Assembly (NCBI GenBank): GCA_965202585.1
Contig: OZ241832.1
Coordinates: 17,422,001 to 17,486,000, forward strand
Reading direction: 5' to 3'
Origin: Thalia democratica
Lineage: Eukaryota
Length of the DNA: 64,000 nt
Part shown: in pieces, positions 458 through 51,500 of the stretch
Numbering within the stretch: position 1 is the first letter of the stretch
How the letters are laid out: each line of letters starts with the position of its first letter
Program-made: the position numbers and the translations under genes
Notes under the pieces: model-generated
Told to the model about the DNA's origin: nothing
The model's input: only the letters and a program-made list of their open reading frames with translations
The model's database searches: none

Positions 458-2893
458 CACATCAGAGGTTTGTTGTTTAACCAAATAAAATGAACAAGAT
501 TATAGTCTCATATGTTATAAAACATGTTTCATTTTGAACGTTCTCATAAACTAATCATAAAAGTTTGATTTTGTACTCTTCAAAAATGTTAAATAATCAG
601 GTTCCAATAACGAAAACTTGAGCAATCAGGAAGAAAACTGTAGATGTATCTAAACTTTTTATGCCTTCTATGACCACTATGCTTAAACTCTTGAAATTTT
701 TATTAGTTTCTTTAGGGATAATACTGAGAATGTTAGACTGTTTTTAACTTAAATTTAGATAATGTAGTAATAAAATTGTACCTCGCAAAAACAAAATCTT
801 TTTGCTTTCTAATTACCCTTATCTTGTAGTAACTGTACCTTTGTGATGTCATAAAACAATGTTGTCGGTTTTCAGATGAAATAAAAACTTTGTAATCACC
901 GTTTTTTGCGGGGGTACTTGTTAAATGAACTTGTCAATATTTCAAAAACAGTCTTTTGAAACCTTATGAAATCAGTTCTATTTTCATTGAACTGTTTTTT
1001 TTACGAGATGGTTTGTAGCCAACAGTTTGTTTTAGTTCTTTGTAGGATTAATTAAAATAGCTAAGAAAAACCGATGCACTTTTTTACTTCGTTGTTTGAA
1101 GAACTATCAAGCTTAGCTTTTAACCTTGCTAAACACTTAAATTTCTAAAAATATTAAAGATTTGGCACAGGCCCATCGGTATAAAATATTGTTTGTTAGT
1201 TTGTAATAAGGGGTTAAAACAACTTGATATTGCATATATCTAAAAAAAAGCAGTTATTTAGACTAGTCGAGTATGGTTATAGTGTACTTGCCAGGAAGGT
1301 ACAGCAAGGTAAAACTTGTTTTGTTTAGCAGACGAAATAAAGAGAGTTTTTTTGTGTTTAGCAAACGTAAACACAACAATTTATATTTATTCTATGCTTA
1401 ACATGTGCTTATTTTAACAAAATTGGCCTATTAACAATCGATTTGGATTCAACTCACATATCATACAGAATCACAAAAGTCACCTGCAACTCAAGATTAT
1501 TTAAAATGAGATAATTCGGCGCTGACCTTTGAGAGAACTGAAAGAAAGTAGAAATCAGTGATGCGTGAAATATGAAGCGTGTTTGCGATCACCACCTTGT
1601 GGTAAAAGTTGAAGTTTGCAGAAGAAATTTGAACGTTTCAACAAATTAGTGTTGATGTTGCTTTGTTGGTGGCAGTTACAAATTATTTTGTTGGTTTAAA
1701 TTTGCTTAAACAACCTTTTACTTGTAGTTTTGTTTTAAAAGTTGTTATTTTCAATGCTTAAAATTTGTTATAAACTAATTGATATTTTTTGATAACTTTT
1801 TCAAACTAATTAGGTTTCATAAAATAAGACTTCGTTGTTTAGTGGCAGTGCAAAGTATATTGTTGTTTAGTTTTTATTTTTTAGAATACCTTTTCTTTTT
1901 AATTTTTATGTAGAATAACATTATACAAGTTGTTTTATTTTTACTTTAAAGTTCATTAAGTTTGTTTTTATAGTTTAAAATGCTTAAAATACGTAATCTA
2001 AATGTTTTTAAATGTGTAATCAAGTTTAGATTCTTAAGATTTAAAGTTAAACTCATAAAGACAAATGTTAACTTTTTATAGCGCAGTTATTGATTTTTAT
2101 GTTAAGTAGTAATAACAATACTATCGTAAAAATGGAATACAAACAATCTTAACTTACTATGTATTCTCAGTAGACATTTATTTGAACTTGATTAATGTGT
2201 TAATTTTATCTAAATACTGTCATGTTGACAGATACAAAATGATCATATAAAAGTTCCAAAAAACCATCTTACTAGTTCTTATAAAACAATCAAATAACTT
2301 TTTCAGTCTATGCTTCTAGTAGTTTTTTATCAAGTTGTTTTTGTTTGTACCTTATTTAGTGGATAATTAACGAGTTTTATCAACATTATATCTTGTTGAA
2401 GCCTGACAAAGTTAATTGTAAGCTAAATATTTGCTTTTACTTCGGTTAATAGTTTGTTTGTATTAATTTATAGTTGCAAAAAGCATATGTCGTGTTACTT
2501 AAACACTTAGCACAACTTTTTTAAATATCTTTCAACGTGGCCTTCAATTTTTTTGCAAAGTCAAAACTAATATGAAAAACTTTATTAAACTTCAGATAAG
2601 TTTTGACAGAAAACAGAAACTATTTGTTATACCGGACGCTGGTTTAAAATATATCAGAAATATGGATTAAACTGTCCAATTTATACTTTTTATCTAAATT
2701 AAACATCAGCCTAGCTGATCAGTATTATCAAGCACACAACAAGCTAATTGACATTCACTAATTATTAAAAGTTTTATACAACTTTCTTTTTTGTATTTTA
2801 TTACATTTCAATGTGTTTTCATGATATAAGTTTTCACAGTAAAGTCGAAAATAGCCGGGTTTGTAAAGAATTTGCATTGTGAGGCATATAAAA

Positions 2894-3018
2894 GTATGTG
2901 GTAATTTAATATTCTTTATAAATTCGGCGGAAACTTGCTCTACTCAAAGAGCTGGGCATTACTGGCTGAACCTAGCTGAAATCATTGTGACCATTCAATT
3001 CAACTTGAGCATTTAGAT
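2894..3018. promoter_or_regulatory. Conserved non-coding element B (units 1 and 2 only)
   Basis: 123/125 identical to 25546-25670 by eye; missing from unit 3 near 46075. Confidence 0.55.
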
Positions 3019-3418
3019 TTCAATTCTTTCCAAATTGCATGTTTTTATTTTTAGTGAGTTTATCACGTTGCAAAGCTCCTATGTAAATACAACTTCGCCT
3101 TGCTTCACTGATAATGTTTTGAAAAATATTAAAATCGAAACTGCTTCGTCAAAGAGTTTTATTTTACTATGTAAGCGTCATTTTAAAGCTATGTTAAGTT
3201 AGTATAATACTTTTATGGTTATAAAACAATTTTTTTATATTATTGTAACTAAACCAAAAAAATATTCGACTTCAAAGTAATCAAAAATAACTTTGATAGG
3301 CTTTTAAGCTTATTAACAAAAATATAACATAGTATTCGACTTACACTAATATAACATAAACAGATTTGTTAAACTACTAGATTACCAACAACTTAATACC
3401 AATGTTAACTACTTGTTC

Positions 3419-7710: not shown

Positions 7711-10700
7711 TAAAAACTAATATCGATCAAAAATACACATTTAAATTACTTGTTATGAAATTAGCTCCTATCTTTGTGTTTTATTTAAACCACAATAACT
7801 ACATCTATATTAAAAAGTATAACAAAGTTTAAAAAACTTAAGTAAAACAATGATTAATTCTGAAAATCTTAAAAAGGATACTAAAAAAACTATACATAAA
7901 AAGCAATACAGTACATATATAAATTATTAAAATGTTACTCATCTAAAATTAAAAAGGATTTAGCAATTTAAAACTAAGATAAAGTATTTAATTAAACATG
8001 ACATAAATTAAACTAACAAATCAACTTTTTTACATAAGTTTTAACATTAATCGCAAATACTAGTCAATTTCTGACTTAACTGTTTCAAATATGTTATTTT
8101 AAGTATCAGTGTACAAGTTGTTGTTATTTCAAGCATCATTACAACTATAAAGTACACTGTTTTTATTTACGTCATATCGAAACCTGTTTTATTAAAGCTA
8201 TTTGTATTACTTTAACTTAAGTGACAAGCTAGACTTCAATAAAAACCTTTAAAAGTTTAAAAAAAACAACAAATAGCATTATTTCAATAAAAGTAGTTAT
8301 AAGTTATAATAAATATACAAAATAATTTTCAAGATTGAAGTGAATTTAAAAGATAAATTACTTACAAACTCCGTTTGTTTTCGTCAAAATAAATTAGATA
8401 TTAAATTGCCCTTCGATTTTCAAGACCCCTTTTAAAAATGCGGCCAAATAAAACCCCATCTGTCAACATTTGAACATTTCAGTGGTGATCACGTACTGTA
8501 AATAAGAAGCCATCATGTGTATAGAAGTTCATTCGTGCAGTGGTTGATGTAAACTTTGTATTCAGAAAAATAATAAATATCGAGCAGGTGTTTGTGTGTG
8601 AGAAAAATAATTGTATTTTTTGTATTAAGTTGTTGGTAGTCAGCTATGTCTCTCTGTTGGTTAATCTATTTTGTTGCTTAGATTATAATCAGAAATATCG
8701 AATCATGCTAGATCTATATGATAACAATATTATATTTATGTTATGTATTATTTTATATTATGTAAAACAAAAGAAATTTATTATTGCGTTTAACTACAGC
8801 TTTAGAAATAAGCATACTAAAACTAATAATTTGGTTTATTTCAATATAAGTACTTGTTATCAACAAAAATAAAGTGTTTTTTGATTAAGTTGTAAGGATT
8901 ATCTTATTTTGAATGTGTTCGTCTAAAGATTTTACATACTGATTGATACTTGTTTTGAAAGTTGCATTTTAATGTAAAATGATATTTATTGCTTTTTAAT
9001 TGATTTCCTGTAAGTTTGCTTAAAACTGTTATAAATCTTATTAAAATACAGTTTCGCTAAGACCAAAGAATTAATCAACTTTAAACCTTTTGACAGCTTA
9101 CATTTAAGATATTTCATTTTTTGTGCTTGACCTTAGACAAGCTTTAGACACTAAAAACTTAAAAAAAAAATGTTTTTTGTTTATCTTGTTTACAAAGCGT
9201 TTTAGCGCTTTCCGACAATTAGCTTGCTACTATTCACAAACGCTCAATTCTTTTATAGCCTATACTCGCCTTTTTATTATTCAGTCAAGTCACCTCAAGG
9301 CTTTTAAGCTTCACTGTGAAACGAGCTAGTCTAAAAGAATTTTCAGCAAGTAAAAATTGATTAATCTTAATTTTGACGGCAGGGCAGATCGGAAAAAACA
9401 AACAAAAACTCATGCTCATATTTATTTTTGTAGTTGGATTTACGACCTTTTGATACTTTTAATCTTGTGAAAATAAAGATTCTTTTGTTGCTGTTTTTCT
9501 TCTACGTGTTAACATCAGAATATTTTTGATAAAGTAAACAACCGACTAACTGTCTTTTGTAGTTTTTCAAATCATTGAAGTGTTTCAATAAAAATCTAAG
9601 TTATTTTAGATCCCAATGTCAACATTACACGTTAAGGAAAATTATTCAATTTAAAATAATATGTCTAGTAGATTATAGTTTAAAAATTATTATAAATCAA
9701 ACGTAGCGACAATATTTACTCATCTTTGTCTAACATAAATGGCCTTTATTGCAAGGTCTGACTTTTTGTGGCAACTACGTGACAACAATCAAATTAGGGT
9801 TTAGTATTTAAATAAAAATCATAAATAATTTAAAACTTATTTTTTTAATAAATTCAAGTTTTATTTGGTTATGTGCTTTTAAGTGAAAAAACTTAACTTG
9901 TTTATTTCCCAAGGTATAATCTGTTTTAGTCATGGAAAAGTTACTACAATTGCTTAAACTTATTTTTGGATTTTAGTTTTTAGTTATAAACTAAACCTTA
10001 TTTTAAGTCACATTAAGCTTTTTAATATTTTTAAGTTTTTAATTAAAATTAAGCTTTTGGAAAAACACACTAACTGTGTTTTTTTAAATTAAAAAAAAAA
10101 CTAAAAATGGTATGTTGAAGTTCAATTATTCAAACAACTAAGCATGAGTTAGATAAACTTTTTCTTACTTTTAAGTTTTTATGTAATTTTGTTTTTGTTA
10201 TTTAAAAAAAATTTTTAGTCGTGTTTAAACAGTGCGATAAGAAAATTGGCAAAAATATAGTAGCCAGAGAACTTGACCTCTGTGTGTTTTATGAGCTTAA
10301 TAAAAAATCAGCTTACTTTCTCACAAACTTGAAACTATCGAAAGTTAGTTTGTTATTTGTAAATTAGTTTACTCTCATTTAACTAACAAAGTCAAGTTTA
10401 ATGTTGCTTTCTTTCACTAACAACTTGATAACTAACAACTTTCACAATATCAATGTCAACCCAGTTCTGTCTTATTAAATCTACCCTTATCTTTTCACTT
10501 ACGCGCAAATTAATTTGCGTTTACATAAAAACGTTGCATGTAGCAGGTGCGTACTAATTTAGAATTTAATTTTAACACTGGCGGTTTTTTTACGAAAAAA
10601 ATTGCAACTTTGCATTTGAAATCCGAGCATTAGTTATTAGCACTTTTTATAAAGAGCTGACAGAGTAATTCGTGTTCTCACGTTATAAATTAAATTAACG

Positions 10701-11411: not shown

Positions 11412-11792
11412 AAAAACTGAAATGCACATCAAGCTTCCTACATGCATTGTTTGTATAGCTATCACCTGTTATCTATCGTTTGTTTGATTTAAAAAAATCA
11501 GGGTTGTCATTACCTCTTGTTATCAATGAGCACTTTGAGCTATTTTATCGGTTAAGCATTAATTGAAGTTATCTGTGATAATGTTTTTGTAAAAGAAACT
11601 AGATTATTATGAATTACTAATAAATACTTAACTGAAACAAAGCTTCTACGTCATAACATAAAAATAAAATAACTACTTATTAAAAACATTATAACTTAAT
11701 TAACTTTGTCACAAAAACACACAAAAATCTTTTTCAGAAAAAATATATACTTTTAAAACTTTTAATGATATTGGATCAAGAGTGAATGTATA

Positions 11793-13858
11793 ATGAGGAA
11801 AATGAAACTACTTTTTATCGTGGTAATACTCATAACAGTTATTGTTGGTTGTCATGGTGTTAACAAAGAAACTTGTCGACAAAGTCATGGAAAGATATTT
11901 TGTCAGGAGAAAGAACTTAAAGAGATTCCTTCAGACATTGTGTGGCCTGAAGCAACGACCCTACTTCTTTATGGAAACCAGATTGAAAGTACTGAGCAAC
12001 TAGATATTCATCTGAGCATGTTCAAAAAACTTCAGACTCTTGATATGCACATCAATCGTCTAAACAGGGTGCCTAAAGCCCCAACAACTATCAAAAAGCT
12101 AGACCTTGATGCGAACAGAATCAAAAGAATAAGCACGGATCTTAACAGCTTAAAAGAGCTCAAGGTATTGTCTTTGAGATCGAACAAATTAAACGACGCT
12201 TCTTTTGACTCAAACACTTTCTCTGAAAACAATAAATTAGAGGAAATCAACTTAGACTACAACCAGTTAGAATTCATACCTAAAAACTTGCCGTTGAGCC
12301 TGAAAAAGTTGACACTGAAAAACAATTCAATAATCAGTATTCAGAGACAACCCTTAGACCGTTTAGTAAACCTACAATTTCTAATGATTGAAGATAATTT
12401 AATAACAAACATGCAAATTGAAAGAAGCTCTTTTTCGCAATTGAACAATCTTAAAGACTTAAACTTGCAAAATAACAAGTTGACAGACGTACCTTTGGGT
12501 CTTCCGTACACTCTAAAGAACTTATACCTGTCACACAACCAGATAGAGTACATCAAAATTGAAGATGGACCTCACAGTGGTACCTTGTTTAAGTTTGAAG
12601 AACTAAAGTTTGTAGATCTAAGCTACAACAAACTGAAAAGTGTTCAACCTCGTTCATTAGACAGCGTCAAAGCTGCGAGTTTCAAAGGTAATAAATGGGT
12701 TTGTGATTGTTGGTTGGATTATTTTAGATCATGGCTCGAAACGTCACTTAGTAACAAGGATCTCACTTGCGATGGTGGACCTCTAAATTTGTTAAGTAAA
12801 CCAATAAAAGAATTGGATGACTTGAGTTGTGAGTCTAGATACAGGGCGAGAAATTTTATTAGTGCTTCTGTTAATCACAATTCAATTAAAATAACCTGGC
12901 AGCATCCGTATAAACCACCTGCTTTCGTGCAAACTCTTGTATTATACGGTGAATGTGTCAATTGTAACGAACGTACAATGTACAGGAACAACATAGCAGT
13001 AGAAGACATGACTTCGAGATACAAGACTACTAACTTTACTTCAGTAGACAAGAAAGCAAACAAACTGGCAACTCAATTGAACAGTTTGAAAAGTAACATG
13101 ACGTATCACGTTTGCATTTACGATAGCGAACAAAACGTTGATGACGTCATTAATAACCAGTGCAGGTTGATCAGGACGAGCCCACAAACCGTGGACAGTT
13201 CTTCTATGGACCCTGTCTACTTGGCCCTGATAGTTTTATCTACTCTATTGTTGCTTACTGTGATTGCTACTGCTACTTACTGTTTATTTCACCACCAACT
13301 ACCTGGTTTTTCAAAGTTCAAACGAAAAACTACTACTCCTAGAATGAGTCCTGTTGACCTGGAACGTCAATTTCTTCCCAGAAATCATCAGAGTTTGCCT
13401 CCAGGTTTTCAAGGGCATCCTGAAGATTACCTAAATCAACAACTTCGACCACAGCCATCCATACCTGTTACAACCCATAATAACGGTAGCTACCCTAATC
13501 ACCATAGCAACCAAGCTGATTACAACACCCAGTGGTCGAACCGAACTTACGCCGAGTGCGGGTCGTACCACATGTCACAACAGCGACACCCAACGAGAGA
13601 ACCCACAATAAATCAGCTTATACCACCCATGTTTCAACCAAGGGACGATGATTGTTACCATGACAACCGAGACGCAGCTGTTGACGCAACAAGAGAGTTC
13701 CAATCGTTGCTGCCTGGCAACAAGAACTCTCCTTCATACGAAGTTCCACAAGTTCCTCTAAGAAACTCACCAATCAGGAGTAATCTTCCGTCACCTACAA
13801 ATGAAATTAACACAAGGTTGTCGTCACCTTTGAGGCATGACAGCTGCAGTGGTAACAG
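11793..13858 (+). CDS. FLRT: FLRT-like LRR-FN3 transmembrane protein A, main coding exon (signal peptide, LRRNT, 10 LRR, LRRCT, FN3, TM, tail)
   Basis: Long ORF with a hydrophobic N-terminus. EATTLLLYGNQI resembles vertebrate FLRT DATTLYLQNNQI. Ten LxxLxLxxN repeats, LRRCT NKWVCDC...C...C, FN3 (SIKITW...LKSNMTYHVCI) and TM VYLALIVLSTLLLLTVIATATYCLF. Acceptor ttttcag at 11737; donor AACAG|GTAAGA at 13858/13859. Family call is from recalled architecture, not a search. Confidence 0.88.
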
Positions 13859-15100
13859 GTAAGAGTTTTTATCACTTATTAACAAGATTTCCTTTTTATA
13901 ACTACGTAATATTAGGTACCTTACTACGTTTAAATATTTTTAAGTTTGAAACTTGTTTATTACTAAATAATTTAGCATACATAAAAAAAAAGTTCAAATT
14001 AGTTCGAAAATTTTTTAAAGTAATACTCATATCTAATATAATCACCACATTATATAAACATAAATATAATGATAACTATCTATTTTCTTGTTTAATTACT
14101 CTTTCCTAATATCGAGTTAATCATAAGCGTTTTTAAAACGTTGTAAACGTAAAAACATGTAAAAGTGAAAAAAACTGACACTTTTAACGCTTGTTTGTTT
14201 GTAGCAACAATTAAGTCTGTAATGACTTGAAAGTACTTTTGCCGCCCGATTAACCGTATGACGTCACAAAGGTATCGGAAAGTTGTGAGGATACTTAGTA
14301 GACACTTGAGAGTCCTCAAATGTTAGAACAATTAACTTTCCTCTCTTTTTAATTTAAAAAAGAATTTTGTCTTTATGAAATTTTTAGTTGTTTCCAGTTG
14401 TTTTAGAAAAAAACCTTCAAGTAAATTAATAGACATATGTTTCCAAAAAATAGGATTAAGCACAATTCATCAATAAGAGTTCAAAAATTTTAATTTTGAA
14501 TTTTAGAAGAGTAAGCAAATACTTTATCAAAATTTTTGAATATGTCTTTAACTATTCTTATTTAAATGTCTACAAAATTTTCCTCCCGAATTAAGAAAAA
14601 TCGCGGCGTAGCTAACTTTAACTTTAATATTTGTTCAGTACTTTACTGCCTTGTTGACTAGATTTACAGCTTTGAATTACTTCTTTGTAAGAAGTTCTTT
14701 ATATTTGCGTTCTATGTTTTTTGCTCATAAAATGAAGTCTTTTAGAATTTTATTGTTGTAAATGCTAAAGCGTGTTTTGCATATGTTTTTTAAATTACTT
14801 GTTTTTGTTTGACTTCTTTAGACCATTATAAGTTGACAAGTTTATAAAATGTTTTTACAAAAATTCAATGTTTAATTTGCAAAAAGATAAACACAACCTT
14901 CATTGTTTTTGTTAATAAAATCTGCTTTTTAATAATGTTTTCTCTTAGCCTCAGGCCTTTTCAAGTTTCCAACTTTTAAAGTACTTATGATGTTGGCTTG
15001 CGAAAACTTAAGTGTAATATATTTCCAAGTAACATACGAAAAAAGTTTATATACTGTACATATGAGTATATATGTTCAATTAATGTTTATCAGAAAGCTG

Positions 15101-15157: not shown

Positions 15158-16871
15158 CCTTAACTTTAAGAAGGTTATCTCTTCATTTCAAGTTTATTAC
15201 GTATGTATGTAACAAATATGTAATTGCTGTTTATTTTTATAAAACTTATTTTTTATAATATTTTTAAGTATTTTTGTAAATGAACGAAATAATCTTAAAT
15301 TGAACAAGTATGTGATTAAAGATACATAGAAATGAACCTCAAACTTTATCATACTTACCAAATTGACCAATTCGAAATTTTTCAATAAAAAATTTCAATT
15401 TTACATTCATAAATACCACATTACGTGCTTATACTAAAAGGTAGGTCTACAAAATTCATACAAGATGAAAAGTTAAGACGCCGAAATTACTTCTTATCTG
15501 CAGACAATTGCAAAGTGGCCCATCATCTAAATTCACCATAAAGTAAACGACAGTTTAATACCAACAAATTGGTCTTTTTTGTCCTATCTTTTCACACCAG
15601 GGTTTAAAAAAATCTCAACTGTGAACTTTGAATCTGTTTGCCACTCCCTGGTATTTGTTGGAAGTTTGTGTTATTTGAAAAGTATAAAAATATAAACATT
15701 GAAAGCTTTTTCATGGTTTGATCAACTTAGCAGTGAACCAATTGTTTTCAACGAGTTTTTACGGGTGTATTATAAATGCACATGATAACATGTAACATCA
15801 TGAAGTTCACAACAGTTGATAATAAATTTCAAGTAAAAAATAGTCTTAAGTCCTTCACCAAGAAAAAAACTTTACTAACAATGTTGTCTAAGCTTTTACA
15901 AAAGCATTTATTCAACAAATTAGTTTTTGTTTTTAGTAAATTTACGCATCAAAATTTGCTATCAAACAAAACACTAACATTCTGAGATAGGCAACGGTTT
16001 ACACCAAATATCACGGATTTATTTGCAGTTCATCACCGACTTAATAGCCACTACTTCGCTCTGATTTTGGTGCAAAAATATTTTGTTTGTTGTCAACCTC
16101 ATTACCAATTTCATGGTCAGTAACAACGAGGTTTATACTTGATAAAAATTTGTCACATCACACCAAACAAAGAGATGAAAAAGAAAAACTAATGGACATA
16201 ATTACATTTCAAAAAAAAAATTCACAAGGTTTAAACAAAATTTACTAAGCAAACGAAACAAACTTTAATCTTTCGAGGTTAAAAGTTTAATCTCAGTCAG
16301 TTAGCAAAAAAATAAAACAGCCAGCAAACAAGAACACATCGATAACATTGTGTGATGTATAGATGAAAGTGACTACTGTTACGTCATAATGTGTATCGAT
16401 CTATAAGTTGGCACTTAAACATCTGTTTTGAGAGCCTCTTACACAGTACATGGCTGGCATTTTATCTAGTAACACTTTTACTTGATGCTACTCATAACAA
16501 TTGAAATGCCACACTCAACAGCTTGGCAAAAAAGTCATTTTTATGAAATTGTTTCGACTTTATAAAGCCTTGTTTGTTCAAATTGTTTTTCTGTCTTGTT
16601 ATACCTCATAAGATTTTTAAACATTAGAACTTAATACTTTTTCTCCTATGTAAAACTATGAAGTAATAAAAATTTATTCGAACCAAATATTTGATTATAT
16701 AGCTAATAAGCTTGAGCTTCTTATATTAACACTATAAATTTAAAAAAATTGCTAAATTTTTTAACCAATTATATACCATAAAAAGTTATAGCTTAAACCA
16801 CAATTACTTTTTTACTAAAACAGTCAAAATGATTTACAGATAAATAAATTTAATGTATTTTGTTTTTGCAG

Positions 16872-17139
16872 CGACTTGAATGGACCAGACACAATGTCAA
16901 CTCACCAAACAACAATCGAGTCCAGTCCCTCACCTGGACACCAAGTTTCGATGACAACGCACAGCAATGACGTCAGAATGCGACACGATGACGTAATAAG
17001 CCCGTACGACCACCTGATACCGCAACATCATTCATCATCAGTGACGTCACCGTCGTTTCTACGCAACAGTAGCGCGTTGTCACGTGACAGCGAGTATCAG
17101 CAGGTCAACCAGGGAGAAGTCAAGTGGTACGAAAGATGA
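16872..17139 (+). CDS. FLRT: FLRT-like protein A, terminal coding exon (Ser/Thr-rich tail ending KWYER); joined protein ~777 aa
   Basis: Acceptor tttgtttttgcag|C; the phase-2 join AG|C = Ser keeps the frame. A homologous exon with an acceptor exists in all three units. Confidence 0.8.
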
Positions 17140-33552: not shown

Positions 33553-33602
33553 CACACTGATTGTCATGACAACAGTTCACTTTGATTGTAATGACAACAG
33601 TT
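33553..33602. promoter_or_regulatory. X-box-like tandem pair, unit 2
   Basis: attgtcatgacaacagttcactttgattgtaatgacaacag. Confidence 0.4.
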
Positions 33603-37842: not shown

Positions 37843-38087
37843 CGATCTGGATGGGCCAGTCACACTGTAAACTCAATACGAGTCCAGTCCTTCAGCTGGA
37901 CACCAAGTTTCTATGACAACGCACAACAACTACGTCAGACACAATGACGTTATAATTCTGGTAGACTACCTGATACGTTATTCGTCATCAGTGACATTAC
38001 CGCTGTTCTACGCAACAGTTGGACGTTGTCACGTGACATGAGTATCAGTAGGTCAACCAGAACGATATCAACTGGTACGAAAGATGA
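37843..38087 (+). pseudogene. FLRT-like pseudogene B, terminal exon
   Basis: Acceptor cgttttgtag| is retained and the exon is homologous to 16872-17139 (ends WYER*), but it has an early in-frame TAA and indels. Confidence 0.8.
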
Positions 38088-40753
38088 CGTCTTTATAAAG
38101 GTTGCTAAGCAACCACTTAGGAAACGACCACTAGGCGGCTCTAAATTGCTGATGAACAACGAACGATGAACATTAAAAATGTATGATCAGGTTCAGATTA
38201 CTATGCAACTGAATCATCACTAGAATTTTTTTGGAATTTAGAAATAGTTAATTTTATTTAGGTCAGACTGTAAAAAGCAGCTTTAGAATTATTTAAAGAT
38301 ATCCATGCAGTGGATTTTAATTAGTTAAACAATAATTTAAATTCTCCTTCTCTCGATTTTTTAACACTTTTAACACTGCTTATTACCAAGTCAAGCTTAG
38401 GTAATTTTAAAGGGATTTCCTTTTCGGGTGTTTTAGTTAAGTGTAAAATTAATTTACAGATAGACATCAAGTTGTAATTAAGATGAAAACTAGAACGTTC
38501 CTTAGTGCCTCCTGAACAAGGTGATAAGATAACCGACTAGAAATCTATCGTTAGACCCCGAGGATGATGCTAGACAAGTTTCGGAATCGTTTTAAAGGTG
38601 TTGGTTGTCATGGTGGATTTTTATGGTGTTTTTTTTTTCCAACTGAAGTCGTTTTAATATTAAAAAAATCTAAGTGCAGGCTTAATAGATTTATCAAAAT
38701 TTGCTATTACTATAGTAATACAATTACCAAAGAACATATTTATACAGTTTTTTTAAGCTTATATTTATACTTTCAAATCTTATTCAATTCATTAGTATTT
38801 TTTGTTGTGATGCAGAACACGAAAGCATCTTAATATTCATCTTTGTACGATTTACAAACAAAAAGTTATTTTTCTATGTTTTTAGTAAAAAATTTTTCTT
38901 TATTTAGCTATAAGTTTAAAATTATTAAACCCAAATAAAGGGGCCAAAACTTTTAAATGGTTTTAGCATATAATATTTGCCGTACAAATGTGCTCTTATA
39001 TTTGTTATTAAATCGTTTGAAATTTGTTGCTTTTCATTGCCATAAAATTTTTTCTTTATTCGTACTTTTTTTAATTATTTTTGTTGTAAAAATTGTACTT
39101 AACTTTTTTACCAGAAAAAAAACTTTTACTCACCAGTTGGTTAATATACAAATACAATATGTGACTTATCTATTATAGCTAATCAAATTTTAATTATGCA
39201 AAATTTTTAAATAATCATATTTTAAATTCTACAGTGATAAAAAAAGAAAATATTTTGCCAATATTTTTAATCATTAGTTTTTTACAGTATTCTAATTACT
39301 TTTGTTGTCGATTAAAAACTAACAAAAAATACAAAGTTTTAAGTCTGGTTATTGTTATAAAAAACATTTAAGTTTAATACTAACATACTTACTTTCCAGT
39401 AAAACAAAATGATAGATCTGATATGTTATATAAAGTTACCTTATAAAAGCACAATTATTGCAGTATTTTAAAAGTCTTCAGTTAAAGTAAATTAAAAGTT
39501 AAAATTGCATAACTTTACTGCAAAATTAAGTATCACTTTGTATATATTTTTTAATTAAAAAATCATGTTTAGTTAGACTTTGAGTGGTTGTAAGTTTAAT
39601 GTAGTTCTTAAGTATTGTCTTAGACTATTTGTGTTCAAAATAAACAAAATTAGAAGTAAGTTTTATTTCAAGCTACACTTAATTTAGTATTTTAGATATT
39701 AGAGTACATTAGTTATTTCATACAGAATATAAAAGCGTTAAATTAGTTTTACCATTTTCTAGACTTTAAACTTATAATGAGAAGTGAAATAGATTTTTAT
39801 AAAAATAGAATGTACTACACGTGCATTAAAATAAAAATACGAAATGAAATTGCGACGTATATCATCAAAAATTTTACACACTCATGTTCGATTGATAAAA
39901 ATCGCTTAATGTGTGTAGCTAGTAGAAACACTTAAAAAATTACTGTAAAACTTTGTAAATTTTTACATTTAATCTAGGTACTTTTTTTATTTTTTTGAAA
40001 AGTATGACATACATAAGTTTATTTTAGTTTAAATTGGTTTTAGTTTATTGTTTTCTCACGGTCTTTTGTATAGATAAAAATTCTTAGGATTTTTATTTGC
40101 TTTGCAATCATGTTCTAGTGTTTGTCTTATGAATAATAAAGTGTTAATGGCAAGAGTGAATATTTCTCCTATATGCTTATGGAAGTTTGACAAAACCACA
40201 ATCATTTTTATTGTAAGCTGTCTGTAACGCACATTTGTTTTTTTCGCTATTTAAATTACAAAAGTATTTTTTATAGTAACATGTTTAGTTAAGTTTTTTC
40301 ATTATATAATGTAGTAAAAGCATTTTTAATAGAGCAAATGAATGTAGGTATTTATAAGTCTGTTAAAAAACAAAACTCTTTTTTACTATTAACTTTGTTT
40401 TCGTTTAACAGTGTCTATATATAAAACCATGGTTATATAGTATAAATGTAAAATAATTGTATCATTGGTCTTTAAAGTAATTAATTTCATCATTCACAAT
40501 TTTGTATATCTATGATAGGTCCTAGCTATATAGATTACAATACAAAATCAAACCTTTTATAGTATTTGTTTACTTGTTTACACTATATTGTATACAACTT
40601 GATTTATAATAGTTGTCATTGTTGTATTTGACTGTCAATTGTTTAATGTGAGTTTACTTTTTTAGAATTCCCTTATTTAGAAACTTAAAAAACTAAGTAT
40701 ATAGTATAAGTTTAACTTTAAAGTAATGAACTGTTAATTTGTTAACAATTCAA

Positions 40754-41026
40754 TCGTGCAAAAGTGCAACCCGTACAAAACTGTCACTCGGGAAAAATTG
40801 AAGCATTGTGAAAAAGTTAAGTCTTATAAAAGTGACACCTGTACAAAAGTGACGCTTAGCAAAGTGACGCTTAGAAAAAGTAACTCTTTTTGCATATTTG
40901 ACACATGTACAAAAGTGACGTTAGTAAGAGTAACTCTTTTTGCACAACTGACACCCGTGCAAAAGTTAAGCCGTGAACAAGTGATGCTTTGCAAAAAACA
41001 GTGTGAAAAGTGACTGTTTGCAAAGC
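40754..41026. repeat. Degenerate ~15-bp minisatellite (tg(t/c)(a)caaaagtgac-type) inserted only in unit 2
   Basis: Repeated caaaagtgac/aaagtgac/aagtaactctttttgca motifs; absent at the homologous position of unit 1 (~20745). Confidence 0.7.
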
Positions 41027-44000
41027 ATATCTATCCATCTTTTAACAACTGATTTGCTGAAGTAATTTTAAGGAAGGTTTTTTAAACTATAACTCTAAAA
41101 CTATACTTGTCTTTTATTTTTATGCCGCCTTCAATGACATGATCAATCTTTAGCAAACTAAAAAGTGAAACATCATTAATACGAGGTGTCGTTAGCAGAT
41201 ACCAAATTTAAATTAAACAAACATTTTAAACTGGTTAATGAAGAAATATTCTCATGTACTTGACACTGATAAGATTCTTATGTTCAAATTAATAATTAAG
41301 TGTATAGTAGCGGAATATAATACTTACATGAGCAGATTGTTGTAAAATAATCAATTTTGTCTATCAATTAAATTTCAAATATCTACTGTTTAAAAACTTT
41401 CACAAAAATCAATATAACAGCAGAAACACTTTTTAAAGCTGCAATAAGTTTGCGCATACTCTACTCACTTTTAAAAAGTATGGAGTTTTTAAACAGTTTG
41501 TTAAATGGTAAACAATGAAGCTAAAACTCTTATATACAACATAGAAAGTAAATTTGTTTTGAATTTTATGATTCTACGCTTACTTCAAAACTTCTAACAA
41601 ATGTTTTACATAAAAATTTAATATAAATAATGTATCTTTTTAAATATTGACCCCAAAAAGACATGAGTATTTATGACTTTTCTTCAAAAAATTAAAAAAA
41701 TACTAGACTGTCAAGATATTTTATCCTCGTTTTATCAAGAAATTCATTGGTTTTCATTCAATTTTTTTTACCTTCAAAATATTGTCCAAAAGAATTTCTT
41801 GTATCAACATTTAGTTTCTCTGTTATGCTTTTGATGATAAACAATACATTAGACAATTGATGATGATATAAAGAACAAAAGAAAATCAGCAGCAATCTGA
41901 TTAACAGGGAGAGACCACAAGCATTATAACGTAATAAAGGCTGATAATGGTTTAAACTTTTGAACATCAGTTCAAGTATGTTAAACTAAATAAAAAAGTT
42001 GAAGGTAAGAATAATATTTTAGTACAAATTTCACTAATTATAGATTCATTATTTTATGGATATATAAAAATAGTCCGTATTTTAGACTTAAAAATTAAAT
42101 AAACGGGGCAACTCAGAAATGTGATTGTGATTAAGACTTTTACGGCACATTGTAACAAATTAAAGTATGAAAAGCATGTTTGGTCGACCCTTAAAAACTT
42201 GTAACTTTGTAGTTAACCTTATAAGTACATAGAGATTATTTAACCTCATACATAAAAAACCGAAAGTATAATCCAAAAGTGTGACAACTACAAAAAACGC
42301 CATAACTTAATACTTTTAAGCATTTTAGCTAGAGCAACCGACAAAAAAGTTTAAATTTGATCTTTACACCACTTATACTTGCCGGCAAACACATGTTGCT
42401 ATTTTGACGTTACATTAAGGCTAAATACTTCATGATGACGTCACACACGAGACGTATGCGGCGTGTTTACTATCTGTATATGTTTTGCTGCATTTTGTCG
42501 TGAGAAATACGTTTGGTTAGATAAAATTTATTGCCTTGCAGAAGCTGGAGGTTGTTGATAAAATAAATAAATCCATCAAAATAATAGTATATTTGAAATA
42601 TGCCTTTAACATCACTTTTTTATAAGTATTATTACATATTGTAGTTTGGTTTAAAGCAAAACCTGAAAAAATAACTGCCAGTAAATCAAATAAAAAAGTG
42701 CTGCTAAAAATACAACAGATCTGTTGTTTAAAACTTCAAATCTATGATCTAAAATTTGTTCTTCTACGCATAATAGTTTATGTAATAATTCATACAATTA
42801 GTAATCATGAAAATTGTCGTAAATTGTTTTATAATTTGCTTACTGCTTAAATTATAAAACTACACTGCCTAAAAATTCATTAAATGAAGTTTAAATACAG
42901 CTAATGAAAATAAAAATTTTTAAGCACTAAATGAAACAACTTGCTTGTAATCACTTTGATTTAAACTACCTACCGCTGTAATTACAACATATTTATGATG
43001 TCACGAAGGATTGTTATTGGTTTATATTGTGATGAAACGAAAAGATTATAATCATTGTTTATTTTGTGCATATTTGTTAAATGAACATGTCACCATTTCA
43101 ACAACAGTCATTTCAGAATTAATGAAAAAGGTTTATCTTTTTTGTTTAAAAACAGTTTGAAAAGATTATCTTTCACTACAGGCTTCAAAAGTTATTCAAG
43201 TGTAAAATAACTATAAAATAATATTAACTATTAGTAAAGTGTTAGTCATTAAGCTACTTTAGTTATTAGAAGAAATGAAAATCCTTGAATAAACTCTAAC
43301 TAACAAATATAACTTGTAGCTAGTTTTATAAAAACTACAAACTACAAAGACATACAATATAAAGTTTTATGAAGCATGCACTAAAACAACTTTGAACTTG
43401 TCACATATATTTTGCATCTCAAATTTTAGTTGTGTTAGCTATCAAATTACTAAAATACGGAAACTAAAAGAAAATTCTTGAGGTATAAAAGTTTTGAAAT
43501 ATTTAATGTCAAACTTCGTACATGAATAAAACATTAAGATATAAAAGTTTCTATACTAATTAATTTTAAAGCTATTTCAAAGAAAAAATCATTTAAAATG
43601 TTTCATAGTTTTTAAGCATTTAAAACTTTTTGATCAATTAACAAAATTTCTGTTGTATAGATTTTTTTTAATAAAAAAAAAGAAAAAAAAAGGACAAACT
43701 TGATTTAATGTTGTATAAAAAGTAAAGCTTTTTATTTAATTTTAAAACATATAACAAAAAAGAACAAGATGATACTTTACTTATACAATAAACTTTCAAA
43801 ACTTTGATTAGAGCTGTTTAAATAATTTTATAACAAGTGTTATCCGTTTGTGTAAGTATAAGATACTCTTAAACTGTAATCGTAATAAATAATAACTATT
43901 CATACGTTTAGTATTGTGAACGACATTTGCATTTTAGAAAACAACACATTATTTTGTTGTATTTAAATCTCGAAATTTAAGTTTATGTAAAACTTAATAA

Positions 44001-46556
44001 TGTTAAAGATGATAAAGTGACAGCTTATCTATAACATTTAACTTTTTCTGTAAACAACCTTCGCTAAACTTTAAAAATAGTTTACTTTCAATATTTTTAT
44101 TTGCAGTAAAATATTTCATATCAAGACACAACAAGTTTTATGTGTTTTACTGAGATTACTTTCAAAAATACACTATTAATTTTGAAAAATACTAAAGCTC
44201 GTATTTATAAAAGTGTTTTAATAAGCTGAAAAAATAACTGTATTTTAAAAATTTCTTAAAATTCTCAATTAGCTTCAAATTACCTTTAAATTACTAAGAA
44301 AACTTAATTCGAAATTTGACCAAACAAGTATACAAAAGGTTTTATATTTTTACATAAAATTATCTTATCACAAAATATTTTAAAAGTTTTATCTTTATCA
44401 GCATCAAAATTTAAAATTATACTTTTCGATACAAAATATTAGATTGTTAACCATAAAACTTAAACATTTCAGAAATAATCAAACTTAAACTTTGGTTTTA
44501 ACTTTGAGTTTACTTTATTAATTATACTATTAGAGTTATCAAGTAGTTTTAGTTCATAAATTTATCATTATTTCTAAATTATATAAATACGTGTAAATTT
44601 TTTATCTATTATGTTTTTTTTTTTAAATAATTGTTTAAACAAGTAATATCTGTAACAAAAAAGATTAAAAGATTTAAATACGAGAAAACTGCATTGATTA
44701 TTGTTTTCAAAGACTTTAATAACATTTTTTAACAGTATAGGAAAAAGACGGAAGTATAACTATTGTAATTTAGGTTACGCTTAGCATCTGCTTAATTTCA
44801 ACCAAATTGGTCTATTAAGAGTCGTTTTAAAAATAATTCATATATCAGACAGAACCACTAAAATCATTTGAGTATTCACCTGGATTCAAGATGACATAAA
44901 ACGAGAGAAATCATTAACATAAGAGAATTGAAAGAAAGTAGAAATCAGTGACGCGTAAAATATGAAGCGTATTTGTGATCACTACCTTGTGGTAGAAGTT
45001 GAAGTTTGCAGAAAAAATTTGACTGTCTCAACAAATTAGTTTTGCTTTGTTGGTGGCAGTTACAAATTATTTTATTGGTTGTGATTTTGATTTCGTTTAG
45101 ATAGCTCTTTATTAAAATTTTTTATCCACGAATTTCTTTTAGTGATTGTTTTATTTTTCCTATAATAGACAATAAGCTTTTTTAGTACTTAAAAAGGTTA
45201 AGTTTGTGTAAACTATGTATGTTTGAGTGTGCCAAAATATTAGATTTTAAAAGAAATATTATATTTCGATTTATAAATACACACACTAAAATTTATACAG
45301 TGCAGTTGTAAAATTCGATAATTAAGTGAGAACTAAAATACAACTTTAATCTATTTGCGTTCCAAATGGTGTATTATATAAGCTTGATAGTAAAATAGTT
45401 TCTTTTAAAACCTAACATTTAAGCATTTTCAAAATACCTTAACAAACAAAATTAAATCAAACCTAACTTAAACTATATCTCAAAACACAACTTTAGTACT
45501 TTTACGTTTAGTTTGTGAACTAAATTTATACTTCAGCTTTTGTTTGAACCATCTTTGGTGAACAGTTAAAGCGTTTTATGAGTTTAATGTTTTGTTGAAG
45601 CCTCACAAAGTTAATTGTTAGCTAAATATTTGCCTTTACTTTAGTTAATTGTTTGTTTGTCTTAATTTTTTTTTATACAGCATATGTCGTTTTTACTTAA
45701 AAACTTAGCATATGCTTTGAAATGATGTAAAAGTCAGGTACTAGTCTGTGTTTTTTCGGTATTTTTTTCCGAATTTAAAACCAGTATGGAAACTTAATTA
45801 AACTTTATATAACGTTTTCTGAAAAAACTAAAACTTTTTTTTAAAACTGTGTGCTTATAAAAGAATATTAGGAAAATGGATTAAACTCTCCAACTTATAC
45901 TTTTTATATAAACTAAATATGACCATAACTGTTTAAAATTACAGGTCTTATAAACACCGAATCGACATAAACTAATTTGTTAAAGTTTTTAAAGCTTATT
46001 TTTTAAATTTTATACAAGTTTAATGCGTTTTGATGACGTAACTTTATAAAATAAAGTCGAAAACAGCCGGGTTTAAAGGGAACTGTGCAAGTCTCTTCAG
46101 TAAAATAATCTTGTTGCAAAGCTTCTATGTAAATACAAGTTTACTTTGCTTTATTGGTAATGTTTTGAAAAATATTAAGTTGGAACTGCTTGAATTGGGA
46201 AGCTTGTTTTTTTATATAATTGTTATTTGATGGCTCTAGTAATTTAGCATATTTTTATCTTTTGGCTAAAAGCTTTCAAAAGTTTTTTGATATTTTTATT
46301 GTTGTTGTTATTCGACTAAAGTTGGATACGACTACTTTAAAGCTTTTAAGTTTATTAACAAAATTTCAACAAAAACTTTTACTTACACAATTTTAAAGAT
46401 ATGTAAGTTTTTTATCAGTGTACTTTTGACATAGAGATTTAACATAAGTTTAGTATGCGATTTATTCTTAAATTAAATTATATATATACAGATATACTAA
46501 AATACCAGATTATTAATAGCTTTATACCAACATTAACTAATTAGTCACCGTACAAT

Positions 46557-46711
46557 AAGTCAAAATACAAAAATCTACTTTAAAGAGGCGACTTAAGATG
46601 TTGCAGTGTTTAGTGTAAACTCGGCAGGAGAGAAAAATCCAGTTTACAAAACAATAACGCGGAAAATCATTCAAGCGTGAAACGAGCCCCCATATCAGGT
46701 TACCTGTTTTT
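46557..46711. promoter_or_regulatory. Conserved non-coding element C, unit 3 copy
   Basis: 153/155 identical to 3419-3573. Confidence 0.55.
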
Positions 46712-48486
46712 AGTATTGACAAAACGAACTACAAAAAATTTATATTATATAGCATACTTTTTTCTTTCAAAATTATGGTTTACTTTAATTTTCAATACGT
46801 TTTACTTTCTGATAATTTTAGATGATTAAAAAATTAGTGGGATTATGCTCACAAAAAATTCGAATTAAACGCTAAATTTTTTAAGTGGCAACTTTCTAGT
46901 TTCTTTATAACATGAAAGTTACTGCTGTGAAAAAGCACTTGAAAAACTCTCGAAAAAATCTGATTAAATACAGTATTGTGCTAATGTGTAGCTGATAAAA
47001 AAAAATACGATTTAACTTGAACCAATCGACTACAATAATTTGTCGAGATTCAAAGCGTTAGGAATTAAAGCTTCTAATGAAAGTTAATTTTAGATTTATT
47101 TAGTTTTTTTATCTGATTTAAAATTTAATTACATTGAAGAATATTTTTCTAATAATAGTTAATTTCTTTCAATATTATATATGTCATTAATTTAATTTAT
47201 AATTTATAGTTTGTTTTCAACACACCACAGTCGTTAAAAAAAACGTTGGGAGCGGTACTAAAAAATAATAAAAATATTTGCATTGTCACACAGAATTTTA
47301 TAACGGCTAATTCAGTAAGCTTCAAGTTGAAAGTTTTTATAAAAACAACATGCCACCAAAGAGAGTTTGAAATTAACAAAAGTTCGCTCTACAAATTTAC
47401 AAGCTTGAAATGCGATTATTACGTCATTGTACTTTGTTTACATTATATTTTGAAATTGTTACAACGGCTGTAAAACATGTTTAATTATTAGTATGTACTC
47501 GACTTGTTTTACATGTCATTTATATTTGAAATATACTGAAACTATTAGACGTGCGTTTGTTTTTTTGGGCGTATGTTTATATTTTGTTCTAAAATCGTTG
47601 CAGAAATGAAAAAATCAATTAAACTGATTTATCGGTCGCTATTAATACTACTACTTAAATTATTGATTATTAACTGTTTTATCTATGATATTGAATTGAG
47701 GTTTAAACAGTTATTTTACTCCGTTTTGTTTTGTTCACTTATTTTAAACTTAAACATTTAGAACAAAATATTTTAAATTGGTTTTAAAAGTCAAAAAGAT
47801 ATTTAAAAATATAACTTTTAGCCAAATAAGCCATTATGATATTGAAATTGCTTAAGAAGCTCTTCGCTAAGTGTGTATTTATTTAAATTACTTTGCAAAT
47901 AAAAACAAACGCAGGTTTTAGTGTCTCTGAAGTCAAAATAAAGATTGATTATCACATAAAAGAAATGATTGGCATCACGTTTGTTATTAAAACAAACTTT
48001 TTTATACCAATACTATATTCTAAATACAGCAAAAAACTTTTTATAGCTTTCATTCATTGAAACATCAAAACGATCACACTCAATTGTCTGTTTATATTTT
48101 TTCACTGTAATTAAAAAAAAAGTAAATAAAATAAAGCAGTTGTTACGAAAATTTAAATTTTCATGCATGTAAACAATAAACAAATTCGCGAAATTTTTAT
48201 GTTTCAATTTATGGGTTTACTTCGTGTCATTTAAAAATAAGTCAAAAATCTTCACAATTGTGTTTCAATATCTAAAGTAAGCAGTGTGTAGCATTCTGTA
48301 AAATATACACTTATGCACGTGCCAAGGAAACAGTAGGCGGAAATGTGATACTATACAACCGTCGACATAATACTGCTACAACATGAGTCTAAATTTAAAC
48401 ATAATCGATTAAGACGAATTGATTCACATTTATTTTTGTACAGAAACAAAAGATACATTCTACCTTTCTAAACTTTTAACCTTTTT

Positions 48487-48583
48487 ATTCCGATTACCAC
48501 GCTAGTCAGATCAACCAATTAACCTATATGCTCAGCTGTGTGCCTTTGATATCTCACCCCAATATTTCCATAGCAACTACAAG
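48487..48583 (+). other. Putative first exon of FLRT-like gene C
   Basis: 97-bp homolog of 6214-6310 with donor CAAG|GTAACT. Confidence 0.5.
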
Positions 48584-51500
48584 GTAACTATGCAATTACG
48601 ACAGCTTTGCAAACATTCAATTTTACTATATATTGAACTAATTTCGACGATAAGCCAGTTAGTAAACAGTTTTATGTATAATTTCTCTACGCAGAGGCTA
48701 AATTGTGCTCGTCTTGTTTAACTTTCGGCGCGTTTTGTCCGGTTTTTGTGCCAAAATCAACAAAAACTCGGTTTAATGAGCATTCGAGGCGGTCTTTAAT
48801 AAAATAAAAAAAATATTTTTCTAACAAATAATGTTTAAAAACGCTCAAATTGAAAATTAACTTTGTTGAAAGATGATTTTTGGCAGGAGTTTCAGTTTGT
48901 TTGCAATGCTGAGAAAGCGTTTTCGTTTTAAATATGCTCTGATTTTACGGCAGTTTTAAAAGTTTGTTTGCGTTAAAAAATATCGATTTTACGACTTTTT
49001 AATGCCATCGGAAAAAGTATACAAAATAGTTTATTTTCATTAGCGTAAACCGCCGATTTATAATTCTTCACGATAAAATGGTATTTTTATTTTATATTAA
49101 ATGCGAGATAGTTTTAAAAAGTTTGTTGTGCAAACAAAAAACAAAATTAATAAAGCGTTTAAAAACTTTGACTCTTTTAAATTAAATCTACCGTGAACTG
49201 GTTTGAAGCACCAAAATAAGACGATTCGCCCCACTAGAATGAAAATTATTTTCTACCAGGGATCAAGTTAAAAAATTGCCACTGAAGCCGATAAGTCTTT
49301 CAAATGTCAAGTAAGCGGCCTACTTGTATGTAACTAAATATTAAGTTACTTTGCAATCACTATGAAGATCAGTCTTTGTTTTCAATAATTACTTTAACTA
49401 GTTTCAATTATTAGACAACTGTAGTTTTTGTTCAGTTTGAAAAGCGTTTTTTCTTAATAATTATACAACTTGTATTTGAAAAGTTTTAAACATTAAAGAA
49501 ATATATTTTTGATTTGTCTTGTGCCATAGAGACATGAATGGATATTTTTACTTTTTTGTGTGTCTTGAAAATTAAATTAAAAATTACAGTACTAAAAAAG
49601 CTATATTAAAGTATTTTAGTATGTATTAACACTAAAACATTTTTAACTTCACAATTATTTAAGTAGTATAAATGTTTTCAGTATAATATTAACTTTCAAC
49701 ATTAATTAAGAAAGGGCTTAAACATGTTTTACTTGGAAAACTAATGAGAAAACTGTTTTCTGATAAACAAGTTTTAATATTACTAATATTTAAATTGAGA
49801 CGCGATAATAGGCCTATACAAAACTTTGAAACTTTCACTATTGTTTTTTTGTTTGTTTATTAATAAAGGTAATTAATTAAACTTCTCTATGAGAGAGTAA
49901 ATGTGTTTTGATACAAATAACAAGCATGTGTGTTGCAACAAACATTAAAACTTTGTTTTATCTAACATACAACATAATTAAACGGTCATTAGAAACTAAA
50001 ACAAGTAGAAAAATACCCATTTTTAACTTTTTGTTGTAAAATAAACTCTTTTTCTTTGTATTTGTTTTTTGAAAAATAAGTTTGTATTAGTTTTTGTTTA
50101 CTTACAAAATTGTAAGTTTTGATAGTTTCAAGTATTTTATTCTAAGCATCAGTATTTTATTTGTTAAAAGCCTCAATACAAAGTACTTTGTTTTTATTTA
50201 AATCAATTTAAAACAATCTCTAAACATATATAACTAAAACTAAACTTACTAAATAGTTTTTAGTTTAAGTCTTTAAATATTTGAAACACAACAAACATCT
50301 TGGTCACAATAAAACCAGCAACAAACAAAAACAAAAACTTCCCTTAAAAGTCTACTTAAATTGTTTGATAAAAAAACTAAGTTAAAAATATATTAAACTA
50401 ATTTAAATTCACAAAGTTACTGTCAATATAAAAAAAAATTCTAAATTGAATCAAAATTTATTGAAGCCACTTCAAGAGCAGCAAAATAAACAACCGTTTG
50501 TCAACATGCTAACAATTAAAATTAAATTTTTAATTAATTAAAATTTTATTTATTAAAATTAAAAAAAAAATAAGAAGCTTTTTCGGGCACGTTATATTTT
50601 GTTAAATATCAGTAATTTTTTATTTATTAATAAGGCGTTGATCGGTGAAGATTAAATTTTATATTTTTGTTTGCTTAACCAGTCAACTTTTTTGATATTT
50701 TATAACTTTACGTTACTTTGACTGTGTGTAGCAAAGTCTGGTTTGACTTAAGTTGTTTTATTTAGATTGTATTTTTATTTACTTCCTGTAAGCTTACTTA
50801 CATGTTTTAAAAATTATATAAAGTACAGGTAGTTTACATTTAAATATTAATCAGATTTATATCTCTATATTTAGATAGCTTAATTTTTTAACATTAGTAA
50901 TTACATACAAATTAGCCTCTTTCTTTGTACAAGTGCTTATCTCTTTATTGGCCTCTAATTGATTTCTAATTAAACGCTGAACCAACCTTGAGGCTGTTGA
51001 GTTTTATTGTTAAATTAGATATGTAAAAAAAAAGATTTTGGGGAGAAAAAAAGATTAATCTTAATTTTGACGGCTAAAATGCCGAAAAATAAACTCGTTT
51101 AAGAACAATTTTGTAATGTTGGACTTATGACGTTTTAAGATCGTAATACTTTAAATTTTTTTTTTGTTTTCGTGTTTTTTACGTGTGAAATGCGAAACAA
51201 GTCCAAGTAGTAATAGAAATCTTTCGGTATTTTGAAATAATTAAATCGATCAATAAGTTATTTTAGATTCTAAGGCAGTTGCACCTCTGCAAAACTATTG
51301 TCTGGTAGGTTAACAATTTTAATTTATATAAAATTCTAAGGTGGCGCCAATATTTACACATCTTTGATCATTTCAATTGTTCTTTATAGCGAGGTCTGAC
51401 GTTTTGTTAGATTTTGTTGAACTACGTGACAACAAAAATAAGGATTAGTACTGAAATTAAAATTTCTCACCCTCAAAACTTAAAAGTTAAATTTTAACTT

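Follow-up and report, generated by a model that had tools for sequence, protein, structure and literature searches.

A tandem array of FLRT-like genes in Thalia democratica whose pairwise-shared non-coding blocks probably reflect birth and death with random loss

Globin and olfactory-receptor clusters are tandem families that evolve by unequal crossing-over, birth-and-death, and gene conversion, and in the protocadherin and UGT1A clusters multiplied promoters or first exons feed shared downstream exons. A further framework for duplicates is the duplication-degeneration-complementation (DDC) model, reportedly put forward by Force et al. in 1999. The locus considered here is a tandem array of nerve-guidance-type genes resembling FLRT on contig OZ241832.1 (C8) of Thalia democratica; the window, i.e., the stretch of 64,000 nucleotides that was analyzed, is C8:17422001-17486000, in a genome of 801 Mb with ~26% G+C. 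With globin and olfactory-receptor arrays it has in common units of ~20 kb arranged head to tail, duplication breakpoints that are staggered, live copies mixed with a pseudogene and with relics lacking the gene, and hints that copies have exchanged sequence. The initial annotation had described conserved non-coding blocks partitioned among three units and had related the occurrence of every pairwise combination to complementary loss of cis-elements, the hallmark of DDC. We find it likely instead that the window is part of a birth-and-death tandem array shaped by staggered duplication, a dead middle copy, and random small deletions, and that its block pattern does not diagnose divided regulatory inputs.

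The array is larger than the three units initially described. Self-comparison and a three-way alignment placed three head-to-tail, colinear units in the window: U1 (1365-24473, 23.1 kb), the pseudogene-bearing U2 (24474-44767, 20.3 kb), and U3 (44768 to ~64100, i.e., ~100 nt past the window end, where gene-less copies begin); all lie on the plus strand, as do the features below unless stated otherwise. The alignment was made with MAFFT in its fast mode, which places some of the 3' sequence of U3 incorrectly, and BLAST and segment alignments were relied on there. Similarity of ~65 to 72% identity survives along much of the units, with long stretches still alignable at 66 to 70%. Beyond the window stand four partial gene-less copies, Ua to Ud (~64.1-98.6k in window coordinates), and a fourth full unit with an intact gene, UL (103.4-119.4k; coding sequence 113565-115607 in the same coordinates). 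C267:1563-29219 is colinear with UL (C8:17522975-17547996) over at least 25 kb at 89 to 97% identity, with strongly clustered differences, and represents either a (diverged) haplotig of UL or a very recent segmental copy. In all, at least eight units and the C267 near-copy were found, of which only three units fall in the window. An inverted, gene-less partial copy of the unit was also seen on the minus strand 9 to 17 kb upstream of the window (C8:17404669-17412730), with homologues of U1 1.4-2.2k, 16.1k, and 20.1-22.7k and without the coding exon.

Two of the units in the window carry an intact large coding exon, of 689 aa in U1 (11793-13862) and 696 aa in U3 (53336-55426). The U1 product is FLRT-like, with an LRRNT domain, leucine-rich repeats (LRRs), a weak FN3 segment, a transmembrane (TM) segment, and a tail. 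Pfam matches in the LRR protein were LRR_8, LRR_4, and LRRNT, and in a phmmer search of the PDB the top seven matches were all FLRT2/3 (E 9e-33 to 3e-31, residues 26-351). The FN3 segment reached an E value of 0.0027 and 18.3 bits against a Pfam cut-off of 25; as read from the translation, without a TM predictor, a hydrophobic run of ~25 residues near residue 480 followed by ~190 aa corresponds to a single TM helix and a cytoplasmic tail. The exons of the probable three-exon gene model were analyzed separately, and an exact-protein look-up for the gene calls gave no match. Purifying selection is evident by dN/dS values of ~0.17 to 0.19 for the deep pairs among U1, U3, and UL (0.29 for UL-C267), at dS values of 0.66 (U1-U3), 0.75 (U1-UL), 0.91 (U3-UL), and 0.10 (UL-C267), with third-codon identity among the deep pairs of 64 to 71%.

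The gene of U2, on the other hand, is a dead pseudogene. Its exon (34008-35061) carries at least 13 stop codons in the homologous frame and a ~963-bp internal deletion, the equivalent of U1 12528-13495 being missing, with a frameshift past the junction. Unique substitutions in the U2 coding sequence amount to 0.132 per site, close to the non-coding background of 0.144, and the U2 copy of a probable third exon (described below) has both a stop codon and a frameshift.

We compared the blocks by blastn against a 164-kb extended region, and all six pairwise matches in the initial annotation proved real, significant, and colinear (E 6e-18 to 2e-79). U1 and U2 share block B (2858-3040/25511-25692, 91.3% over 183 nt, E 4e-70), block F (5454-5576/27951-28074, just 75.6% over 127 nt, E 6e-18), and block G (19871-19947/39828-39904, 83% over 77 nt, E 9e-18; 19860-19960 in U1 as a feature). 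Block C (3419-3603/46557-46741, 94.6% over 185 nt, E 2e-79) and block E (2393-2510/45592-45708, 85.7%, E 2e-33; 2390-2510 in U1 as a feature) are common to U1 and U3, and block D (30903-31099/50565-50750, 81.4% over 199 nt, E 3e-48; 30850-31099 in U2 as a feature) to U2 and U3. In this search B, C, E, F, and G had no match in the third unit at an E value of ≤1e-3. The range originally given for F, 5510-5660/28010-28160, is sound in its left half, which aligns, whereas its right half has no alignment. Likewise, the match of D between U2 and U3 stands, but D is not limited to these units, since U1 retains a diverged, undeleted homologue of ~60% identity (8461-8650), with a recognizable remnant at 8461-8510.

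Other origins of the blocks were considered. A dispersed repeat or transposon as the source of B, C, and D was ruled out, their copies being confined to the array and C267 within the 801-Mb genome. A structured RNA in B and C was likewise ruled out, with fold z-scores on both strands of -0.8 to +0.1 and no Rfam match; the Rfam search gave nothing at the gathering threshold or at an E value of ≤1, and there were no tRNAs. When the six blocks were examined for coding potential, they lacked both three-base periodicity and a plus-strand frame kept among the copies. Block C does have a minus-strand frame of ~51 to 60 codons open in all copies; this is not significant for 153 nt at ~40% G+C with near-identical copies, and most of the few substitutions in it would change the amino acid, so the frame was discarded as coding.

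The initial annotation proposed that an outgroup lacking the elements would point to insertions or conversions. With paralogues outside the trio (UL, C267, Ub, and Ud), rather than another species, as outgroups, four elements, namely, the 3' core of B, C, the core of D, and E, were found outside the trio, while F, G, and B in its 5' half were not. Because outside paralogues carry them, these four are ancestral to the three units, and the absence of each from one unit is a loss and not an insertion. The 3' 69 nt of B are 96% identical to UL, 94% to C267, and 81% to Ub, compared to a 5' half that is alike only between U1 and U2 (91%, versus ~51% to UL); U3 lost B by a clean deletion of ~170 bp (junction at 46081-46084), evident by gaps in 151 of the 154 B columns. 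Block C, whose sharp-edged core of ~153 nt precedes the U1 ATG by 8.4 kb, is intact in U1, U3, UL, C267, and Ub, is damaged in Ud and Uc by deletions inside it or at its ends, and in U2 has been deleted, with ~55 unalignable nt in place of ~190 nt (26095-26150). Block E occurs also in Ub, Ud, and, weakly, UL, and is missing from U2 by a ~300-bp deletion at ~25236. The core of D has been retained, at 76 to 81%, by U2, U3, Ub, Ud, UL, and C267, and a 30-nt piece of this block kept by U1, Ub, Ud, and UL is deleted in both U2 and U3. Block F falls inside a ~800-bp deletion in U3 (48285-48297) and is not conserved in UL, and block G is located within a younger duplicated segment. At 75 to 84% over ~100 nt, F and G are close to the expectation for indel-free neutral DNA of their age; only B, C, E, and about a dozen islands common to all three units are clearly above the neutral yardstick.

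That younger segment is seen as a continuous diagonal at an offset of ~20 kb, its left copy at 19592-38120 and its right copy at 39548-58543. In the gene part of the unit (U1 3.1-17.0k), parsimony-informative sites with UL as the outgroup favored (U2,U3)|(U1,UL), by 493 versus 271 and 226. In the intergenic part (U1 20.0-22.9k), (Q1,Q2)|(Q3,Q0) was favored by 160 versus 58 and 59, and Q1 and Q2 were alignable over 3334 of 4974 nt, compared to 714 and 942 nt for pairs containing Q3. Because these quartet counts agree with the ~20-kb diagonal, they indicate that one putative staggered tandem duplication, or an equivalent unequal crossover, copied the intergenic region together with the gene. Consistent with the gene parts of U2 and U3 being sisters, these units share the 30-nt deletion in D. 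Islands restricted to U2 and U3 all lie in the gene part, and nearly all of those restricted to U1 and U2, G included, lie in the intergenic part.

To place the blocks among the rest of the conserved non-coding sequence, islands were defined as non-coding stretches with at least 80% identity in 50 columns between two units. Of the islands shared by U1 and U3, U2 keeps 24 of 27; U3 keeps 24 of the 35 shared by U1 and U2, and U1 keeps 23 of the 31 shared by U2 and U3. Blocks limited to one pair are therefore a minority and most islands are three-way; with F and G close to neutral and at least eight units present, the proposed partitioning among three units is not confirmed. Deletions removed island and non-island columns at similar rates (10.6% versus 9.6% in U2, 13.5% versus 14.4% in U3, and 4.6% versus 5.6% in U1), and the island losses that do not follow sister relationships are all gap-type deletions. 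The substitution rate of the third copy in islands relative to non-islands was 0.66 for U2, 0.61 for U3, and 0.59 for U1. Three-way islands have 187 unique changes in U2 versus 177 in U3, with 145 versus 112 in the coding sequence, and within U2 decay is slower in the islands (12.9%) than in the dead coding sequence (16.5%). Island retention in the dead U2 is thus comparable to that in the live units, which fits either array-wide regulatory use or homogenization by gene conversion.

One sequence recurs within these units. The perfect CRE palindrome TGACGTCA occurs 13 times in the window against 0.37 expected, a count reached in none of 100 shuffles, at positions 13142, 14259, 16968, 17042, 22043, 24873, 35489, 42436, 54682, 55785, 58414, 58509, and 63630. 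These sites fall at about six homologous positions across the units, the pseudogene unit included, and often read ATGACGTCAC. A comparison of UL with C267 spoke against simple constant constraint on the islands: columns conserved in U1, U2, and U3 differ by 8.9 to 10.6% in this pair, compared to 6.4% in the background and 4.1% in the coding sequence (stratified odds ratio 1.74, with a nominal p of 3e-4 that is optimistic since the differences cluster). With island divergence in this pair no lower than elsewhere, the islands can be called only putative constrained cis-elements.

Altogether, the results support the following history, told as a probable course of events. The array would have grown through unequal crossing-over, by tandem duplications of ~20 kb, and a later duplication out of register with the gene would have left the gene parts of U2 and U3 as sisters and likewise the downstream intergenic parts of U1 and U2. 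Death of the middle gene would have come after this staggered duplication. Old neutral similarity would persist along the units, with ~25 to 30 slower-evolving short islands in each, and sister segments would share more, giving rise to G, part of D, and most other islands restricted to one pair. Single deletions of 170 to 800 bp would account for the loss of B and the F region from U3 and of C and E from U2, and substitutional decay for the erosion of D in U1. Every pairwise combination of blocks is expected from such a course because three copies each lose a few pieces at random, and the apparent complementarity is forced because a block can be recognized only if at least two copies keep it. 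Random loss and this mode of ascertainment, with one of the units carrying a pseudogene, yield the very pattern that the initial annotation had read as a mark of DDC.

Among the blocks, C stands apart by its structure. It contains a TATA-like TTTAAAG 26 nt before an initiator-like CAGT site, ends in a weak donor, CAG|GTTACC, and has sharp edges common to all copies. It is intact upstream of four of the four intact genes, at 6.8 to 8.4 kb from the ATG, versus one of five units without a working gene. The pseudogene, in turn, has no C. This distribution would fit a gene-essential element, most likely a core promoter, a 5' non-coding exon, or the two together, rather than an enhancer open to partitioning. 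A T-rich tract followed by a CAG acceptor is kept ~75 nt upstream of the ATG in U1 (11726-11736), U3 (53267-53277), and UL, while U2 reads GAG; such an acceptor implies a putative upstream non-coding exon or a trans-spliced leader, and it could be the latter, rather than an exon in C, that is received there.

A downstream exon is suggested as well. A GT donor overlaps the stop codon that ends the large exon, reading AG|GTAAGAG in U1 (13859/13860), AA|GTAAGTG in UL, and AG|GTTAGAG in U3 (~55396), and a strong acceptor ~3 kb past this exon opens a phase-compatible frame in U1, U3, and UL. The probable third exon thus delimited encodes 88 aa in U1 (16872-17139), 78 aa in U3 (58265-58502), and 52 aa in UL, the copies differing by in-frame indels only, with dN/dS of 0.23 to 0.41. 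The island at 16844-17148, taken as non-coding, is very probably this coding exon. In U3 (55396-55426), the stop overlapping the donor has been lost (TAA to TTA), and the unspliced frame is longer by a few residues.

Several observations weigh against the history proposed above as a full account. U2 and U3 are joined by a short internal branch (raw distance 0.42 versus 0.47 to 0.48), and what the younger duplication can account for is a tendency, with a modest surplus of shared sequence, and not the very high identities; B, at 91% over 183 nt between U1 and U2, and C, with 2 differences over 153 nt between U1 and U3 against a dS of 0.66, are far above neutral expectation, so that selection or gene conversion is needed beyond history. 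The proposed role of C as promoter or first exon is drawn from its motifs and its association with intact genes. Moreover, B, lost from U3, and D, decayed in U1, form the sole pair that is formally compatible with DDC between live genes. For the first of these points, it is possible, if not favored, that short interlocus gene-conversion tracts homogenized B in U1 and U2 and C in U1, U3, and Ub, such that sharing would mark the last exchange and not a kept enhancer. The likeness of these non-sister tracts is what such exchange would produce, as is the confinement of the 5' half of B to U1 and U2. In the core of C, U1 is separated from U3 by 2 differences and from Ub by 4, yet UL and C267 differ there at 7 sites, although the latter two are ~7 times closer synonymously (dS 0.10 versus 0.66). 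Sites 102, 111, and 126 of C occur in all four haplotype combinations, i.e., violate the four-gamete rule, and a linked two-site variant is common to C267 and Uc; CpG is involved at two of these shared sites, however, where recurrent mutation is possible. The signal uniting U2 and U3 vanishes in the islands (10/12/9 versus 190/164/321 in the background), a contrast that at p 0.09 is not significant. Islands have 30% G+C versus 25%, and the greater divergence of islands between UL and C267 also fits conversion, its p-value being optimistic as noted above. When clusters of UL/C267 differences were checked, no tract in which UL or C267 is near-identical to another unit was seen, and hence no recent donor-recipient tract, and the same sharp edges of C in all copies suggest a functional unit rather than independent conversions.

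Selection across the array, the alternative that the initial annotation had mentioned as sharing among copies, fits a dead U2 that retains its islands as well as live units do, and that part of the early reading is in keeping with the data. Under it, the islands would be cis-regulatory modules acting array-wide, selected even in the pseudogene and gene-less units for the benefit of neighboring live genes, with redundancy that tolerates single losses; we consider this tentative. It accords with the retention in U2 of 24 of 27 islands, the near-equal counts of unique changes and similar relative rates in U2 and the live units, and the slower decay of islands than of coding sequence in U2. It also accords with gene-less units beyond the window that keep C and other islands at 90 to 98%, and with the recurrence of TGACGTCA at homologous island positions, U2 included. 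Conversely, no constraint on islands is visible between UL and C267, islands are not depleted in deletions, at least one of them is really a coding exon, and gene conversion could mimic their retention. Selection and gene conversion probably both contribute to the likeness of islands. A broader version, in which the islands, including the promoter-like C and the CRE blocks, are active control elements selected across one multiplied regulatory landscape, in which extra copies of C might act as alternative promoters or first exons of FLRT-like coding exons further downstream, appears rather unlikely; if true, loss of a single block would tune the output of the array rather than divide it. Subfunctionalization by DDC, for its part, would have to be sought between the live genes, as the dead U2 does not satisfy a model in which all duplicates are functional and U1 and U3 are the intact ones; because the U2 gene is dead, its loss of C and E is not subfunctionalization. 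Between U1, which has no intact D, and U3, which has neither B nor the F region, each gene might cover part of an ancestral expression pattern, with B kept and D decayed in U1, and D kept and B deleted in U3. The 3' core of B and the core of D are ancestral, as their presence in UL, C267, and Ub shows, both genes are intact and under purifying selection, and the sites are plausible for cis-elements, since B precedes the putative start region in C by ~430 to 610 nt, and D falls within the long first intron. Yet UL, the fourth intact gene, and C267 each have all of B, C, and D, which leaves no subfunction confined to one copy; the losses are not distinguishable from random loss, with complementarity forced by block detection; units only 20 kb apart would allow enhancers to act on neighboring promoters; the UL/C267 pair shows no reduced island divergence; and D is conserved at only 77 to 81%. 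We regard this division of inputs as improbable, and birth and death with random loss as the likely explanation of the window.

Within the coding exon, a tract in the region of the LRR C-terminal cap (U1 12507-12791; U3 ~54050-54330) shows almost no synonymous change among four paralogues, with 5 to 8% nucleotide divergence versus 18 to 27% in the remaining coding sequence. Its ratio of shallow to deep divergence equals that of the gene outside the tract, the outcome expected under constant constraint, and the tract is thus under nucleotide-level constraint inside the exon. Small open reading frames elsewhere in the window (8540-8872, 13837-14109, and 62644-62916) had no Pfam match.

The broader point is that presence and absence of blocks among tandem paralogues can be mistaken for subfunctionalization. 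Before a DDC reading is adopted, one should ask whether every copy is alive, establish the relationships of the pieces, and consider whether block detection itself imposes the pattern. What is left after these checks is a moderately interesting residue, namely, short islands that persist in dead and gene-less units. Because live, dead, and gene-less units stand side by side, the locus is a reasonable test bed for enhancer sharing between neighbors and for separating selection from gene conversion.

Set beside the systems named at the outset, the locus departs from globin and olfactory-receptor arrays in that short non-coding islands are better kept than the synonymous sites of the gene and persist in dead units. 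It resembles the protocadherin and UGT1A clusters in its repeated upstream units, in each of which a promoter-like C precedes a downstream coding exon (as with Ub, Uc, and Ud before UL), but here damage affects C in two of these three gene-less units, every live gene also has a C of its own, and the splicing is only putative. As in the DDC model, ancestral blocks have been lost from different duplicates, and each live gene lacks one block that the other keeps; unlike in that model, one copy is a pseudogene, further intact paralogues hold all the blocks, most islands are present in all copies, and the case is known from sequence alone. With vertebrate FLRT1 to FLRT3 the genes have in common an LRR ectodomain like that of FLRT2/3, an FN3-like segment, a single TM segment, and coding sequence placed almost entirely in one large exon, and FLRT2/3 orthologues reportedly go back to the common ancestor of tunicates and vertebrates (PMC11203038). 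Compared to those vertebrate genes, the copies described here form a lineage-specific tandem array, with a probable extra 3' coding exon and an FN3 segment that falls below the Pfam cut-off.

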